DNA of 64,000 nt. It comes from Diplonema japonicum. Lineage: Eukaryota; Protista; Euglenozoa: Diplonemea. Position 1 is the first letter of the stretch. Each line of letters opens with the position of its first letter. The position numbers and the translations under genes were made by a program. The stretch spans positions 62,001-126,000 of the forward strand of contig OZ025702.1 in the NCBI GenBank assembly GCA_964019335.1, in the 5' to 3' direction. Under the pieces are notes generated by a model. That model had not been told where the DNA came from, did not search any database, and saw nothing but the letters and a program-made list of their open reading frames with translations. Below are positions 58,042 through 64,000 of this stretch, one piece after another.

Positions 58042-60066
58042 ATGAAAAGACATCTGCTTTTCTCAATATTAGCCTTGGCGACAGCGGTGGGTGGTGAGCT
58101 GCTGATCTGTGTTGATGACATGGAGTGCAAGGCCCAATCCCCTGACCTAAGATGTGTGCGCTTCATGGTGGATGGAAATGTGCTGGGAGAAGGCGCTTGC
58201 AAGCCGTTGATGAAACTGGGCGATGTGTGCTATGGGGACGCCGTAAGTGTGTATGAGCCACAAGAGAACGGGTGTCCTGAAGGCACGGTGTGCAAAACAG
58301 CTGACTACTTTGCGGACTACAAACAAGCAAGTGATCATGTCGGGGATAATGTTGCGAGCCATACCATCCATATGTTGAAAAAAGTAAAGACTTGCCAGGC
58401 GATCATCGAGCCTGTCAAGAACTGCACACACAGCGACAGAACCATCGAGCACGGGAAGTCCATTCGAGTCCAAGACCAGACCTGCGTCTGCTACTCTGGA
58501 CTGGTCACATGCATGAACCTGCCTTGTGAAGACCGCCCCATTTGCGAAGGAAGTGAAGACTGCCTGTCGAACACCTGCGTCGACACGCCCAACGGTGCGC
58601 GGTGCACGATGAACGGGCAGGGGATCTTCCCCACAGTGAACGGTACCTGCGAGGAGAGGGCCGAGGCGGACGACCTCTGCTCCGCCGACGAGCACTGCGG
58701 CGCCCTGAGGTACTGCGACGTTGACACCGCTACATGCTTGATGCGTGTCGAGCTAGGCGGTGCATGCACACCTAACGGGAAACCTTGCGTCACAGGGGCC
58801 GGATGCACAAACTTCAACTCTCGATACTGGAGTGACTACGATCCTTCAAGCCAGTTGGTTTGTGAGGTTCAGAAGGTTGCTGGCGAGTTCTGCGGGTACA
58901 ACGGCGAGCGCCCCTCCACTATACCAAAGCCACAGTGCGAGGCCGGCTCGAAGTGCCTGCGGGCAGACGGCGTGATAGTTGAGTGGTTCCTGACATGCCA
59001 GCATACCCTCGTCGAACCTGTCGAAGGTCCTCCAACAGGCAAACCCGTGCCCGTGGTGCAAGGTATCTGCCAAAGCAACGCGGACTGCAATGGTGACAAT
59101 GTGTGCGACATGTTTCTCAACCCAGAGACCGGCTCTGTCATGAAAGAAGGTGTTTGCGGGAAGGCGATGAAAGAAGCCGGTGATGTGTGTGCGGGTCCGA
59201 GGGCTGTGTACCCGTACCTGCTTCACACGTGTATGGAAGGGACTAACTGTCTAGTGATTCCAGGGGCGGTGCCTGACTTAGGGTTCCCCACTATTATGGA
59301 ATTCCGTCCGTCGGTGTATCTATGCACGGCAGGGCAGGCGCCGATGCTGCCTGAGGCTAGCTGCTTCGATGTCGCACACAACATAACAGTGCTGCATGGT
59401 CGTAGTTTCTACAATGTTGATGATGGGAATTGCAAGTGCTACAATGGTACGTTCGAGTGCAAGAAGCTGCAATGCAGCAACGTTGACAGAGGTTGCTGCA
59501 ACCAAGACAGCGACTGCGGGGTGAACGAGAAATGTAATGAGATGAACAGGAACTGCGATGTGCTGCAGCCATTAGGTGAACCGTGTGACACTATCCTGGC
59601 TTGTGAGGACGACTTGTGGTGCCACAATAGCAAGTGTGTGGACAGGCTTCCTGGTGGTAGCCACTGTACGAACGATGGCAGTTGTGGTGTTGGTCTTGCA
59701 TGCAGGTCAATAGATCAGGTTTTCGATGAAAGCGTCTTAGCATGCAAAGCTATTCCAGACACTCCAGCCCCCCCTCCGTCCCCTGCCACCCCCGCACCAA
59801 GCACACCAGCGCCTCTCACTTGGTCGCCTAAAACGCCAGCACCACTGACAACTGCCCCGCTCACCCAGGAACCGACTGCAATTCCTACTCTCGCTCCCAA
59901 CACCCCCGCTCCCCCGCAGCCCGAGTCTTCGAAGGCAAAGAAAGCTGTCATCTTTCTTGCCATTCTTTGCAGTGTTGCCTTCATTGGTTTTATCGTCTTT
60001 TACGCCTTCTGTAGAGCGAAGGCTGGCGGTGGCGACTATTTCGTCGAGATGACCCCAGTCAACTAG
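58042..60066 (+). CDS. Cys-rich type I cell-surface protein
   Basis: Signal peptide, repeated CxxxxDC/GxxC...C modules, TPAP-rich stalk, TM helix, short tail ending YFVEMTPVN. Confidence 0.85.
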   Translation: MKRHLLFSILALATAVGGELLICVDDMECKAQSPDLRCVRFMVDGNVLGEGACKPLMKLGDVCYGDAVSVYEPQENGCPEGTVCKTADYFADYKQASDHVGDNVASHTIHMLKKVKTCQAIIEPVKNCTHSDRTIEHGKSIRVQDQTCVCYSGLVTCMNLPCEDRPICEGSEDCLSNTCVDTPNGARCTMNGQGIFPTVNGTCEERAEADDLCSADEHCGALRYCDVDTATCLMRVELGGACTPNGKPCVTGAGCTNFNSRYWSDYDPSSQLVCEVQKVAGEFCGYNGERPSTIPKPQCEAGSKCLRADGVIVEWFLTCQHTLVEPVEGPPTGKPVPVVQGICQSNADCNGDNVCDMFLNPETGSVMKEGVCGKAMKEAGDVCAGPRAVYPYLLHTCMEGTNCLVIPGAVPDLGFPTIMEFRPSVYLCTAGQAPMLPEASCFDVAHNITVLHGRSFYNVDDGNCKCYNGTFECKKLQCSNVDRGCCNQDSDCGVNEKCNEMNRNCDVLQPLGEPCDTILACEDDLWCHNSKCVDRLPGGSHCTNDGSCGVGLACRSIDQVFDESVLACKAIPDTPAPPPSPATPAPSTPAPLTWSPKTPAPLTTAPLTQEPTAIPTLAPNTPAPPQPESSKAKKAVIFLAILCSVAFIGFIVFYAFCRAKAGGGDYFVEMTPVN

Positions 60067-60166
60067 TCCACAGTCTTCTTAGTGTTTGATACAAAAAAGG
60101 AAAAACGAAACAAAAAACACATATCATGCACCATACCACCCCAAAGTACCATACCCCACAGGAAGT

Positions 60167-63034
60167 ATGTCCGCAAAGCCACCTTTTAAAAAGGTCACGA
60201 GAGATGTCGAGCGCATTAAAGTAGCAGTAAGAATACGCCCTATGATCAAGATGGAGAAGGGGGACAGTGAGGTTGTGAGGGCCGTGAAAGGTGTGAATGC
60301 TTTGAAAGTGGAGGGGATGACAGAGGAGTTGCAATATGACTACGTGTTCGGGCAAGACAGCAGCCAGAAGCAGGTGTACGTGGACGCGGTGGCCCCGCTG
60401 GTAGAGACGTGGGTGAACGGGTACAATGCTTGCTTGTTCGCGTACGGCCAGACTGGCAGTGGAAAGACGTACACGATGCTCGGTCCTGATGGCGGTTTGA
60501 AGAACTTGGAGGGGATGATTCCTCAGGTTGCTAAGCAGGTCTTCGAGAGCATCCAGCAGGAAGAGAAGGATTTCAAGCTCTTGATGGGCTCTTCGTGCGT
60601 GTCGCAGTTCCAAGTGCGTGCATCGTACGTAGAAGTGTACAACGACGATGTCCGCGACCTCCTAGGCACCGACGACCCTCCTGCCGAGCTCCAGGTGCGT
60701 GAGAAAGACCTCCGTGTGTACGTTGAAGGCTGCAAAGAGGTGGAGGTCAAGACACCTGAACAAGTGATAAAACAGATCTACAAAGGAAGCAAGCGACGCG
60801 CCACCGGCAGGACCAACATGAACACCCACTCCAGCAGGTCGCACGCCGTGTTCACGCTCATCCTGGAACACAGGTGGCGGAACTCTTCTGACAAAGAACG
60901 CCAATTTCACAACAAGATATCTTACTTCAACCTAGTCGACCTAGCAGGGAGTGAGAGGTCTAAACGCACTGGAAACAAGGATGTTGCCTTTAAAGAGAGC
61001 GTGTCCATCAACAGCGGTCTCCTTGCGTTGGGAAACGTCGTTGCAGCCTTGTCTGGAGTGAGTGGAAGGGGCGCACACGTTCCATACAGGGACTCTACAC
61101 TGACGAGGCTCCTGCAGTCGTCTCTCGGGGGTGACAGTAGAACAGTGATGCTAGCATGCGTGAGTCCTGCTCTCAGCAACATCGACGAGTCTACAGGGAC
61201 TCTAAAGTACGCGCACGTTACGAACAGCATCAAGATCGCTCCCAAGCAGCACGTGGAAGTAGTTATGGAGGAGGCAGGTCCTATGGACAATGACGTGCGA
61301 GACCCTGACAGCAACTTGGACCGGAGATGCTTATGGATCGACACGTCGTATCACGGCTCAATCTACGCACGGTGCGTGGGCGACGTGGAGGACCCGCTGA
61401 TCCTGCTCATCCACGGGTCAGGGCCTACGAACTCGTCGACCTGGTGGAACAGCTTGGTGCACGAGTTAGCTGTCACGTCGAGTAGAAGCTTCTTCATGGT
61501 GAGCATCGACTGCCCTGGGTACGGCCGGACAGTGGGCGACAAACAAGACGTGAGGTCGAACCCTGGGTCCCTTGTGAAGGATATCATCAATTCGTTAGGC
61601 AGAGCAAAGGCGTTCTGTCTGGTCGGGTCCTCACAGGGGAGCTGCTCGACATTCAACGCCGTGCTGGAACACCCGGACATCACCGACTTCGTGGCAGTGA
61701 TGGACCCTGTGGGGCACGACGTGTTCAGGTACAAGGCGATTAAGCAGCCAACGTTGCTGATCTTTGATGTGGAGGATGCCGGGCACCCTGTCAAAGTGGG
61801 CAGGTGGATGCGAGACAACCTCCCACACCCACACTACCATGAGTTTGCTGCTTCAAAGACACCTTTTTGGCATGTTGACCACATGGCGACTGAGATGATG
61901 AAGATGTTCTCGTCGTACATGACCTCTATGCGTAGGGTGTCCCCTGGCACCATGATGACCCGTCTGGCAGGTGGGCTCATCAAATGGTGTGAAAACGAAG
62001 GATATGGCGAGCCCATCAAGCAGATCGACGAAGGGCTGCTGGACCCACCATCGACTTTCATCGAAGAAATGCTCGGTGAGGATGTCATGAGGCAGCTCAG
62101 CGTAGATGAAGAGGTGTACGAGGAGTCCCCCGACACATGGGAGAAGAAGGCAGACATGAAAACTGGAAGGGTGTTTTATTTTAACAGGAAGACAGGCGAA
62201 TCTACATGGAAGCGTCCGATACACGCAAGCGTCGAACATTTTAAGGAGCAACATGAGAAGAGCGACACTACAGATCTATTTTGCGAGGAAGAAGAGGAAG
62301 AACAACGGCAGATCGAGACCGAGGAGGAGAAAGCAAAGAGAGAAACGATGGAACGAGGGAAAACACACTGCGACCTATGCGCAAGGATGCTGTGGCGCCC
62401 TGTGAGGATCGATCCATGCACGCACACTGTGTGCGAAATGTGTGCAACGCGAACATTGACATACAACAAAATTTGCCCAGTGAAAAAATGCCGTGTTGCC
62501 GTGAAGGGTAAACAACAAGACGCAGTTCACCACGAACAGAACATCACGAGATTCACTGAGAAAGAAGTCGCCCAGCGGGAGGATGAAAACTCCAAAGAAT
62601 CTCAGATCAGAGACAGCTCACTCCGGATAGTTCTCGAATACGGAAACACTTCATCTGGAACTACCGAAGGATCATCACACACCGTGCAAGCCCACATGAA
62701 GGTTCTTAAAGTAGAGAAAGGCAAGCTGTACAAAAAGAAAATGGTGAAGCCCAGCATCAAACGTGTTGATTTCAACATTAACCCTTGCTACCCAAAGTCG
62801 GCGGTGAAGGTCTCGGAGTCTCCGTTCACACTGACGCGCACCATGTCTTCTCGCTTCCCCTGTGACATGACCATCAAGTGGTCTGATACGCTCCCTTCCA
62901 TTACAATCCCGTACACGATCCAGCACCAGTTGGTTACCCAACGCAAAGCTGTCATCATCGTCAGCAACCCTGACAAAAAACCCTCCAACGCCACTGTTGT
63001 CATGTCCGGTCTCTACCCTGAAGTGTTTGTTTGA
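60167..63034 (+). CDS. Kinesin motor fused to alpha/beta-hydrolase, WW, RING and YEATS-like domains
   Basis: GQTGSGKT, SSRSH, DLAGSE, HVPYRDS; LLIHG, IDCPGYG, GSSQG; W..GRVFYFN..TWKRP; CDLC..CTHTVCEMC..CP..CR; LEYGN...IKRVDF...SPF. Confidence 0.9.
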   Translation: MSAKPPFKKVTRDVERIKVAVRIRPMIKMEKGDSEVVRAVKGVNALKVEGMTEELQYDYVFGQDSSQKQVYVDAVAPLVETWVNGYNACLFAYGQTGSGKTYTMLGPDGGLKNLEGMIPQVAKQVFESIQQEEKDFKLLMGSSCVSQFQVRASYVEVYNDDVRDLLGTDDPPAELQVREKDLRVYVEGCKEVEVKTPEQVIKQIYKGSKRRATGRTNMNTHSSRSHAVFTLILEHRWRNSSDKERQFHNKISYFNLVDLAGSERSKRTGNKDVAFKESVSINSGLLALGNVVAALSGVSGRGAHVPYRDSTLTRLLQSSLGGDSRTVMLACVSPALSNIDESTGTLKYAHVTNSIKIAPKQHVEVVMEEAGPMDNDVRDPDSNLDRRCLWIDTSYHGSIYARCVGDVEDPLILLIHGSGPTNSSTWWNSLVHELAVTSSRSFFMVSIDCPGYGRTVGDKQDVRSNPGSLVKDIINSLGRAKAFCLVGSSQGSCSTFNAVLEHPDITDFVAVMDPVGHDVFRYKAIKQPTLLIFDVEDAGHPVKVGRWMRDNLPHPHYHEFAASKTPFWHVDHMATEMMKMFSSYMTSMRRVSPGTMMTRLAGGLIKWCENEGYGEPIKQIDEGLLDPPSTFIEEMLGEDVMRQLSVDEEVYEESPDTWEKKADMKTGRVFYFNRKTGESTWKRPIHASVEHFKEQHEKSDTTDLFCEEEEEEQRQIETEEEKAKRETMERGKTHCDLCARMLWRPVRIDPCTHTVCEMCATRTLTYNKICPVKKCRVAVKGKQQDAVHHEQNITRFTEKEVAQREDENSKESQIRDSSLRIVLEYGNTSSGTTEGSSHTVQAHMKVLKVEKGKLYKKKMVKPSIKRVDFNINPCYPKSAVKVSESPFTLTRTMSSRFPCDMTIKWSDTLPSITIPYTIQHQLVTQRKAVIIVSNPDKKPSNATVVMSGLYPEVFV

Positions 63035-63262
63035 GAATCTGCTTTACACGGGTTAACACCCCCCTTTTCTTTCTTTCTTTCTATCTGAGAGACTGCCTCA
63101 AGATTGTCTTTTCCCCTCCCTCTTTTCCCCCCCACTTCTCTCTCCCCTAGCCTTTGACGCGGAAAAAAAAGTAAGAAGCATAAGAAGAAGCGAACCCCCC
63201 CCCCCCCCCCCCCCCCCAACCGTCCTCTTTTGTATCTTGCACTACACCACACACAGGTGTTG

Positions 63263-64000
63263 ATGAGTGGCTCACCAACGATAGAGACGAACAGATGGTG
63301 GAAGGTAATACAGAATGTACTCCGGTCGGGTGAACTGAGGAGGAAAGTGGAGCAGGTGCCACATGATGCTGCAGATCAGGTGTTGGTGGTAGCGATGGAA
63401 GTTGCAAAGCAGCAGTCGTGGGGCCCGAAGCTGGTCGACTCCTTGTTGTGGGCGTTGCGTTTTAAGACGCCGAAGGAGGTTCTGATGCCGATCCTTGAGG
63501 CTCACGGTTGGGAGAATGGGGACTTCAAGGACGTTCTGACTCCAGACAAGGCTTTGAAATTACATGCTGATATGGTGGTTGCTTTCGCAGTTGCTGAGCA
63601 CGAGAAGACCCCACCTCCTGCGGAGCTCCAGGTAGCCCGCCCGATAACACCGCGCTCCCGTCAGAGGAAGCAATCCCGGTCCATCTTCCATACCCTCTGT
63701 CTTGTCCTCAACCTTCTACACAACCCTTCTGACCCACAGATGCGCCGTAGGCGGCAGCTCCACACCGACCTCGGCCTTGACATCAACCAGATGGAACCCA
63801 AGCACCTCTACACCGCAGCCCTCCGCGAGGTCAACGCTATGCAGACCCTGTGGACCAATCTCACCGACGCACTCAAAACCCTCCCCAGCGCGATCAACAG
63901 GGAAAAGACAAGCACTTGGAAACCAACCCTCCGGAAGCTTGACAAGACCCTGAGCCAGATCCACCCCCCCGCGCAGGAGGCACTCCTTGTCATCGACATC
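63263..64000 (+). CDS. Hypothetical protein, runs off the window end
   Basis: Open frame of 246 codons (MSGSPTIETNRWW...LLVIDI) with no stop; ACACACAG ending at 63256; not in the ORF track. Confidence 0.7.
   Translation, partial: MSGSPTIETNRWWKVIQNVLRSGELRRKVEQVPHDAADQVLVVAMEVAKQQSWGPKLVDSLLWALRFKTPKEVLMPILEAHGWENGDFKDVLTPDKALKLHADMVVAFAVAEHEKTPPPAELQVARPITPRSRQRKQSRSIFHTLCLVLNLLHNPSDPQMRRRRQLHTDLGLDINQMEPKHLYTAALREVNAMQTLWTNLTDALKTLPSAINREKTSTWKPTLRKLDKTLSQIHPPAQEALLVIDI

Follow-up and report, generated by a model that had tools for sequence, protein, structure and literature searches.

What does a kinesin do when a hydrolase and a ubiquitin-ligase module stand where its stalk is expected? 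This question is raised by a gene of the diplonemid Diplonema japonicum, located at 60167-63034 on the plus strand of the window analysed here (64,000 nucleotides (nt) of contig OZ025702.1, positions 62,001 to 126,000, forward strand, assembly GCA_964019335.1). Its predicted product joins a kinesin motor to an alpha/beta-hydrolase, a WW domain, a RING finger and a YEATS-like domain. A sequence-only reading of the window, made without database searches, had proposed a microtubule-tracking machine for acyl-lysine editing and ubiquitination. The analysis favours, with a probability of about 60%, a microtubule-bound RING E3 ligase combined with a serine hydrolase of non-canonical type and a binding domain built on a re-purposed YEATS fold. 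This reading is preferred because the motor, the nucleophile-bearing hydrolase, the RING and two binding modules are intact and conserved.

Pfam analysis recovered the domains Kinesin, Abhydrolase_6, WW, zf-C3HC4_2 and YEATS, all five above their own curated cut-offs and at positions agreeing to within a few codons with the ranges proposed earlier. The N-terminal motor (60215-61231; plus strand, as are all features of the gene given below) matched Kinesin over residues 40-355 with an E-value of 2e-101, and Microtub_bd was also matched. It carries the P-loop GQTGSGKT (60446-60469), switch I SSRSH (60830-60844) and switch II DLAGSE (60938-60955), which correspond to the motifs of the kinesin superfamily (GxxxxGK[ST], SSRSH and DxxGxE) and are at least 90% conserved across the family described below. 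The motor is followed by a neck-linker-like segment, IKIAPKQHVEVV, and a conserved acidic linker (DPM..D..D.D..L.RR), together at 61232-61324, which enter strand 1 of the hydrolase directly, about 30 residues past the motor. The linker residues D379, R386 and R387 are invariant in the family consensus, and the segment was modelled without helix at a predicted local distance difference test score (pLDDT) of 80-93. No coiled-coil stalk was found, the models of residues 368-955 containing no helix longer than about 19 residues. The motor is complete and stalk-less, as had been read from the sequence.

Searching with the tail revealed 61 proteins, most of them 950-1100 amino acids (aa) long, with an N-terminal kinesin, a tail coverage of 94-100% and a collinear domain order. 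The closest relatives belong to five diplonemids (Diplonema ambulator, Sulcionema, Flectonema, Lacrimia and Namystynia); the full-length, transcript-derived D. ambulator orthologue (961 aa) shares 67% identity in the tail and 78% in the motor. Further members were found in the prokinetoplastid Apiculatamorpha (the match labelled PhM_4 is its tree sister), in Ancoracysta, Acrasis kona, Paulinella micropora, Chromera velia and Cymbomonas tetramitiformis, in dinoflagellates (Symbiodiniaceae, Gymnodinium, Polykrikos, Amphidinium and Alexandrium) and in the rotifers Rotaria and Adineta (P0054, P0056), the only animals among the matches listed. Trypanosomatids, Naegleria and the standard model organisms were absent among the matches listed in this search. 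The layout is a conserved family across distant eukaryotes, neither a one-off fusion nor unique to this genome. The rotifer proteins have no WW domain and are placed on a long branch; they may have been acquired horizontally.

An exhaustive search of cluster representatives yielded 102 matches at E ≤ 1e-30, part of which were unrelated multi-WW proteins. This search also revealed kinesin-less proteins of about 500-620 aa in which the hydrolase comes first and is followed by RING and YEATS. One of them, from Lithocolla (P0019), derives from a complete transcript open reading frame, and others are AT-rich metagenomic proteins (P0189, P0196, P0204, P0212, P0219 and P0222). Because hydrolase-RING-YEATS proteins occur without a kinesin, the tail cassette forms a unit of evolution that is found joined to a motor as well as on its own. 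The AT-rich kinesin-less proteins have a ciliate-like composition, a GHSQG elbow and a YEATS loop of the form G-x-Y-E-F, which is nearer to the canonical G-W-G-E-F.

Members of the family bear generic names in public databases ('kinesin-like protein', 'kif4', 'pimeloyl-ACP methyl ester carboxylesterase'). The sequence-only reading knew of no characterised kinesin with this architecture; indeed, no description of the kinesin-hydrolase-WW-RING-YEATS order was found in the literature searched, most subscription journals lying outside that search. Wickstead 2010 (PMC2867816) mentions no such kinesin tail.

The gene was assessed at the genome and transcript levels. The open frame extends from 60086 to 63034, and with the first ATG at 60167 and the TGA at 63032-63034 it gives a complete intron-less coding sequence of 955 aa (60167-63034), which confirmed the single uninterrupted frame seen earlier. 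Searching the 62.5-Mb assembly with the tail showed that the gene is single copy; no further paralogue was found with the tail and a hydrolase-only profile, the sole match being the gene itself. A weak genome match (L002) was ruled out as a paralogue and is an ordinary epoxide-hydrolase-like protein. Four public sequencing runs were aligned to 59600-63500 (3,901 letters). A contig of run X2 (record 10), from a strain about 96-98% identical, covers 60161-60436 and is preceded by 16 unmatched letters, GTTTCTGTACTTTATT, from which the genome upstream of 60161 differs. Extended by GGT, these letters occur 169 times in the genome and not once in the reversed control, which indicated that they are the exon end of the spliced-leader RNA followed by its donor; GTTTCTGTACTTTATTGGT, the leader exon end with the GT donor, is accordingly present in 169 genomic copies (reversed control, 0). 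This leader and the diplonemid affinity of the closest relatives fit a euglenozoan, diplonemid genome. Since this leader-bearing contig starts at 60161 and is unlike the genomic upstream sequence, the trans-splice acceptor AG was placed at 60160-60161 and the start codon at 60167. The leader is joined 6 nt upstream of the ATG, and the 5' untranslated region after the leader measures 5 nt. In run X1, two longer contigs agree with the gene over just 42 nt around the P-loop (60437-60478) before diverging; they belong to other kinesin genes and are not splice variants. In run X4, one DNA contig extends over 59600-63184 and matches the window there without a difference; as it may come from the source sample, it is not independent support. 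Neither a joint nor an internal spliced leader was seen in the four runs over the aligned region, the leader being present only at 60161. The gene is real and transcribed.

To place the motor among kinesins, it was compared with solved motors, which scored in the order KIF7 (240 bits), KIF4 (230), KIF3B (226), Eg5 (215) and kinesin-1 (about 200). In the database, KIF27 orthologues (41-46% identity) come next after the family itself. A maximum-likelihood tree (IQ-TREE, LG+G4, branch support by the Shimodaira-Hasegawa-like approximate likelihood-ratio test, SH-aLRT) was calculated for 75 motors, including 30 of the family, 16 KIF27-like or other database motors and 28 kinesins of the same genome; the partial motors P0011, P0030, P0062, P0067, P0070 and P0082 were left out. 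All 30 family motors formed one clan (SH-aLRT 100). A KIF27-like clade (SH-aLRT 99) was separate and included the KIF27-like kinesin of this genome itself (L013, C32:561279-562283), whose tree sister is P0137 (EukProt label beginning with Hpha). The remaining kinesins sit beyond a branch of SH-aLRT 92. The separation of the two well-supported groups indicates that the family lies beside kinesin-4 and not inside it, that is, it is a neighbour and not a member. With kinesin-4 (KIF4/KIF7/KIF27) it shares the N-terminal position of the motor, the intact P-loop and switch motifs, the top scores and the neighbouring clade, whereas the long coiled-coil stalk of kinesin-4 is missing here and the tail is an enzyme cassette. 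Moreover, PF25764 appears in the precomputed Pfam lists of the KIF27-like matches and in none of the members of the present family.

Diplonemids and prokinetoplastids also have KinesinWW (DIPPA_09231 in Paradiplonema papillatum), a kinesin-like protein that includes a WW domain (PMC13615690). Identity with the present protein was rejected, the motor of KinesinWW being degenerate; the two are different proteins, and the present family, unlike KinesinWW, reaches far beyond Euglenozoa. The kinesin repertoire of D. japonicum is very large: at least 124 kinesin-motor matches were counted in the 62.5-Mb genome, many in frames of 400-1800 aa and some in frames of 4,399 and 9,169 aa.

The hydrolase (61325-61921) matched Abhydrolase_6 over residues 412-559 with 28.9 bits (cut-off 26.3). 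AlphaFold (AF2) models were generated from 42-sequence alignments for residues 368-790 (pLDDT 86.9) and 782-955 (pLDDT 89.2). The first of these comprises a capless, eight-stranded alpha/beta-hydrolase (residues 387-585), a strand-helix extension (586-650), the WW domain, a disordered acidic linker and the RING. The best solved match of the hydrolase was 3bdi (Ta0194, a CIB-like hydrolase; Foldseek E 1e-9, TMt 0.82), on which it was superimposed by VIA with a Z score of 22.6 and a root-mean-square deviation of 2.1 Å over 193 of 207 residues. VIA Z scores of about 19-21 to many other hydrolases and the position of GSSQG after strand 5 identified the alpha/beta-hydrolase fold. The HG oxyanion motif (H416-G417, 61412-61417), the nucleophile elbow GSSQG (61625-61639, with S489 at 61631-61633) and D537 of IFDVED (61775-61777), which occupies the canonical acid position in the loop after strand 7 of the model, had all been recognised from the sequence and are invariant in the 42 members aligned. 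So is H540 (61784-61786), located three residues past D537 within DAGHPV (family motif DxGHPV). Residue Q490 is likewise unchanged in every lineage from Discoba to rotifers, and 40 of the 42 members have H517.

The catalytic histidine, in contrast, is not where a canonical triad would have it. The loop between strand 8 (residues 555-560) and helix alphaF (from 568) reads AASKTPF, and any histidine at 561-567 was found in only one of 42 members; four of the 42 have none within the whole stretch from strand 8 to alphaF. The sequence-only reading had assigned the role to H569 in FWH. This residue, part of FWHVDH (61865-61882) at the start of alphaF, sits in the first turn of the helix, outside the canonical loop, and is kept in 14 of 42 members (H572 in 28; W568 is invariant), so that the assignment was abandoned. 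Residues H416, S489, D537 and H540 are also retained in 11 kinesin-less relatives, most of which lack a histidine near alphaF; among the AT-rich kinesin-less proteins, GxSQG and D-x-G-H-P are kept in all, and eight of ten have no histidine between strand 8 and alphaF. The family therefore lacks the canonical Ser-acid-His triad with the histidine after strand 8, while its Ser and Asp never vary. Given this loss of the canonical His loop and the constancy of H540, the conservation pattern suggests that H540 probably acts as the general base in a D-x-x-H arrangement. Arrangements of this kind are found in SGNH hydrolases.

Comparison with Ta0194 and ABHD14B revealed the same overall construction, i.e., about 200 residues, eight strands, no cap, the HG motif, the nucleophile elbow and an Asp after strand 7. 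In both proteins the catalytic histidine lies in G-x-G-H-P after strand 8 (GSGHPVY in Ta0194, which has KDHVVP after strand 7, and GAGHPCYLD in ABHD14B). In the present hydrolase, the loop after strand 8 is about six residues shorter and has no histidine, and G-H-P-V follows the Asp after strand 7 instead. ABHD14B is a lysine deacetylase (PMC9270251) and is defined by an SxSxS nucleophile motif, an HxxxxD acyltransferase motif and an S-D-H triad (bioRxiv 10.1101/2023.07.30.551196). The present enzyme has GSSQG in place of SxSxS, H540 followed by PVKVG and hence no HxxxxD, and no histidine after strand 8; it is not an ABHD14B by these published criteria. Of the link to ABHD14B drawn earlier, the structural kinship remains, the closest solved structure being CIB (ABHD14B)-like; the motifs that define ABHD14B are absent.

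The hydrolase is prolonged by an extension (61922-62116; strand TRLAG, then helices; modelled at pLDDT 85-95) with the motif T-R-[LV]-A-G-G-h-x-x-W (61958-61975 and beyond), whose first six positions are residues 598-603. G603 is present in 42, G602 in 39, A601 in 37 and R599 in 34 of 42 members. T-R-[LV]-A-G-G is the most conserved motif outside the named domains and resembles the C-terminus of ubiquitin (R-L-R-G-G). In the model it forms a strand beside the hydrolase and leads into a helix, so that a structural turn is the probable interpretation; a pseudo-substrate or a processing site is possible. A giant-virus origin was considered, and an IMG/VR scan with the hydrolase profile returned nothing. 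A 215-aa hydrolase-only relative (P0256) was not counted as a stand-alone enzyme, as its contig measures 1.2 kb and full-length kin are lacking.

The C-terminal domain matched YEATS (PF03366) over residues 858-923 with 25.1 bits (cut-off 22). In the model of residues 782-955, a helical hairpin (62513-62614; model helices 2-14 and 17-35) precedes a YEATS-fold beta-sandwich (62618-63007; AF2 pLDDT 89) with a rebuilt pocket. Every top Foldseek match listed was a YEATS domain (best E 4e-6, probability 1.0 to Yaf9, Taf14, GAS41 and YEATS2), and VIA gave a Z score of 12.2 to GAS41. The segment TMSSRF aligned with RGWGEF of YEATS2. These results agree with the earlier identification of a YEATS-like C-terminus in which TMSSRF takes the place of the usual cage.

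In the structure of YEATS2 with H3K27cr, the acyl-lysine pocket consists of an aromatic sandwich (Y262 and W282), the side-chain-free G283 and hydrogen bonds from H259 and S261; W282A weakens and G283A abolishes acyl-lysine binding (PMC4856769). The pocket was compared by alignment to YEATS2, with frequencies taken from the 42 members. Two aromatic residues are kept, namely Y875 (YEATS2 Y262; Tyr or Phe in 41 of 42) and F897 (F285; Phe or Tyr). W282 is replaced by S894 (Ala, Gly or Ser in 38 of 42), G283 by S895 (mostly Arg or Ser), H259 by the invariant N872 and S261 by C874, a variable position. With other residues at the positions of W282 and G283, the domain lacks the canonical aromatic sandwich. 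The invariant residues of the domain (G826, N827, F869, I871, N872, P873, K877, M893 and C899) fall mostly in three pocket loops, the loops of YGNT (62639-62650), FNINPCY (62771-62791) and TMSSRFPC (62840-62863), which argues that the site is under selection for something else. The conservation of a non-aromatic pocket suggests that the domain most likely binds a ligand other than acyl-lysine held in the canonical way. The domain thus resembles the known YEATS domains (GAS41/YEATS4, YEATS2, AF9, ENL, Yaf9 and Taf14) in its Ig-like beta-sandwich, its Pfam match and the two retained aromatics, but differs from them in the four replaced pocket positions and in its context, a kinesin tail instead of a chromatin complex.

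Between the hydrolase and the YEATS-fold domain lie the WW and RING modules, both of which had been proposed from the sequence and both of which scored above their Pfam cut-offs. The WW domain (62129-62218; Pfam WW, residues 655-684, 34.9 bits against 26.9) has its strands modelled and carries W658, Y671, W681 and P684; its matches in the Protein Data Bank are Pin1 WW domains (E 3e-5). W658, Y671 and P684 are each found in 39 of 42 members and the second Trp in 12, and the domain is absent in the rotifers and in P0051. A linker of LF followed by poly-Glu (62276-62302; Leu and Phe nearly invariant, low pLDDT) leads to a C3HC4 RING (62369-62491) of the BRCA1/TRIM-like pattern C-x2-C-x3-L-x2-P-x-R...C-x-H-x2-C-x2-C...C, matched by zf-C3HC4_2 over residues 735-772. 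All eight zinc ligands are present in cross-brace spacing (C735, C738, C751, H753, C756, C759, C770 and C775). Six of them (C735, C738, C751, C756, C759 and C770) occur in every one of the 42 members; at ligand 4, 22 members have His and 19 have Cys. The RING shares its ligand spacing and the C-x2-C-x3-L-x2-P-[VI] pattern with RING-HC E3 ligases of the BRCA1/TRIM type; unlike these, it is fused to a motor and a hydrolase, and ligand 4 is Cys in the alveolate members.

These data allow the possible functions to be weighed. In the acyl-lysine editor proposed at the outset, the YEATS domain would read acyl-lysine, e.g., on tubulin, the ABHD14B-like hydrolase would deacylate it and the RING would ubiquitinate the target. 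The architecture, the absence of a stalk and the folds on which this proposal was built have stood: the C-terminal domain is truly YEATS-fold, Y875 and F897 are still aromatic and the best structural neighbour of the hydrolase resembles a known lysine deacetylase. The parts which would have to do the editing have not, since one wall of the sandwich is lost, a side chain occupies the position at which a mere Gly-to-Ala change costs all binding, an Asn stands for H259, and the hydrolase has neither the ABHD14B motifs nor a histidine after strand 8. This proposal is therefore disfavoured and regarded as quite unlikely. A chromokinesin-like role, in which the YEATS-fold/RING/WW tail would bind or ubiquitinate chromatin proteins while the motor links chromosomes to the spindle, would fit a motor nearest to kinesin-4, as KIF4 carries a chromatin-binding tail and, to our knowledge, all characterised YEATS domains are chromatin readers. 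However, the pocket for histone acyl-lysine is not conserved, no DNA- or histone-binding motif was detected by the Pfam scan of the protein, and the family is well preserved in dinoflagellates, a group with largely histone-poor chromatin; we consider this role unlikely. The hydrolase might, alternatively, be a pseudoenzyme, a non-catalytic scaffold that only joins the motor to an adaptor or E3 module of WW, RING and YEATS. Its place directly on the neck linker would suit a rigid spacer, no member retains the canonical His loop, and no histidine is left near alphaF in four of 42 kinesin forms and in most kinesin-less ones. Pseudo-hydrolases, however, usually lose the nucleophile, and here the nucleophile Ser, HG, the acid Asp, Q490 and H540 are invariant from Discoba to rotifers, which makes a dead enzyme an improbable explanation. 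Finally, the gene could be an artefact in which neighbouring kinesin and hydrolase-RING genes were fused by mis-assembly or are split by trans-splicing inside the frame. The tail does exist elsewhere without a kinesin, and RNA contigs of near-relative strains fail to bridge the junction of motor and hydrolase. Such an artefact is nevertheless very improbable given the single X4 DNA contig without any difference from the window, a frame free of stop codons and frame changes, a spliced leader seen at 60161 only, conserved residues in the motor-hydrolase linker and more than 40 collinear full-length orthologues, some of them from de novo transcript assemblies.

Several points weigh against the preferred reading of a microtubule-bound E3 ligase with its own hydrolase. 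The unbridged interval (61147-61318) means that continuity of the mRNA from motor to hydrolase rests on full-length transcript-derived orthologues of related species, not on this strain. The RING score lies barely at the Pfam cut-off (27.3 against 27 bits), and D. japonicum has C-x4-C as its last ligand pair. We know of no alpha/beta-hydrolase in which a histidine on the acid loop is established as the base. A placement as sister to kinesin-4 depends on one branch (SH-aLRT 92), because the tree contained 28 of at least 124 kinesins of the genome and no named kinesin-1, -2, -3 or -5 references. Processive transport is doubtful without a coiled coil, and the motor could be a mere microtubule anchor, since KIF7, the closest solved motor, is essentially immotile.

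According to the E3-ligase reading, the N-terminal motor, most like kinesin-4 (KIF7/KIF27), would bind microtubules and turn over ATP, and its neck linker would enter, without a coiled-coil stalk, a fixed tail cassette of capless serine hydrolase, WW, C3HC4 RING and YEATS-fold domain. The hydrolase would use S489 in the GxSxG elbow, the HG oxyanion motif and H540 as the probable general base. The motor would thereby set a RING E3 ubiquitin ligase and its own hydrolase on microtubule structures, with the WW and YEATS-fold domains selecting the partner or substrate. We infer the motility of the motor and its direction, the monomeric state, the E3 activity and the hydrolase activity with H540 as base, and likewise whatever is said on substrates and cellular site; targets such as tubulin or spindle and flagellar proteins would be pure conjecture. 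A wider scenario, offered as a tentative possibility, is that of an early-eukaryotic kinesin family, sister to kinesin-4, which never had a stalk and whose built-in cargo is an ancient hydrolase-RING-YEATS cassette. Its catalytic histidine might have moved to the acid loop in an SGNH-like D-x-x-H and its YEATS domain might read a ligand other than acyl-lysine, the whole acting as a microtubule-guided protein-marking enzyme.

Kinesins are normally transporters which bind their cargo via stalks and adaptors. A conserved family with motor, E3 ligase and hydrolase in one chain would represent a different way of working, in which an enzyme is carried to, or held on, the microtubule. Rotifers have the family, and so do diplonemids and dinoflagellates (coral symbionts among them), protists that are ecologically dominant; its absence from the usual model organisms may explain why it has not been described. 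The hydrolase represents an alpha/beta-hydrolase subfamily in which Ser and Asp are kept, the canonical His is lost and an invariant His is gained beside the Asp. A pocket that is conserved yet non-aromatic would widen the range of what YEATS folds can recognise. Genetic tagging tools exist in Paradiplonema papillatum (PMC13615690), which makes these predictions testable.

The surroundings of the gene were inspected as well. A long poly-C run (63185-63227) lies 3' of the gene, and the contigs of all runs break there. Upstream, a gene at 58042-60066 on the plus strand ends about 95 nt ahead of the trans-splice acceptor of the kinesin gene and encodes a Cys-rich protein of 674 aa, in which repeats of EGF-like spacing are combined with a Pro/Thr-rich stalk and a membrane helix at the C-terminus.

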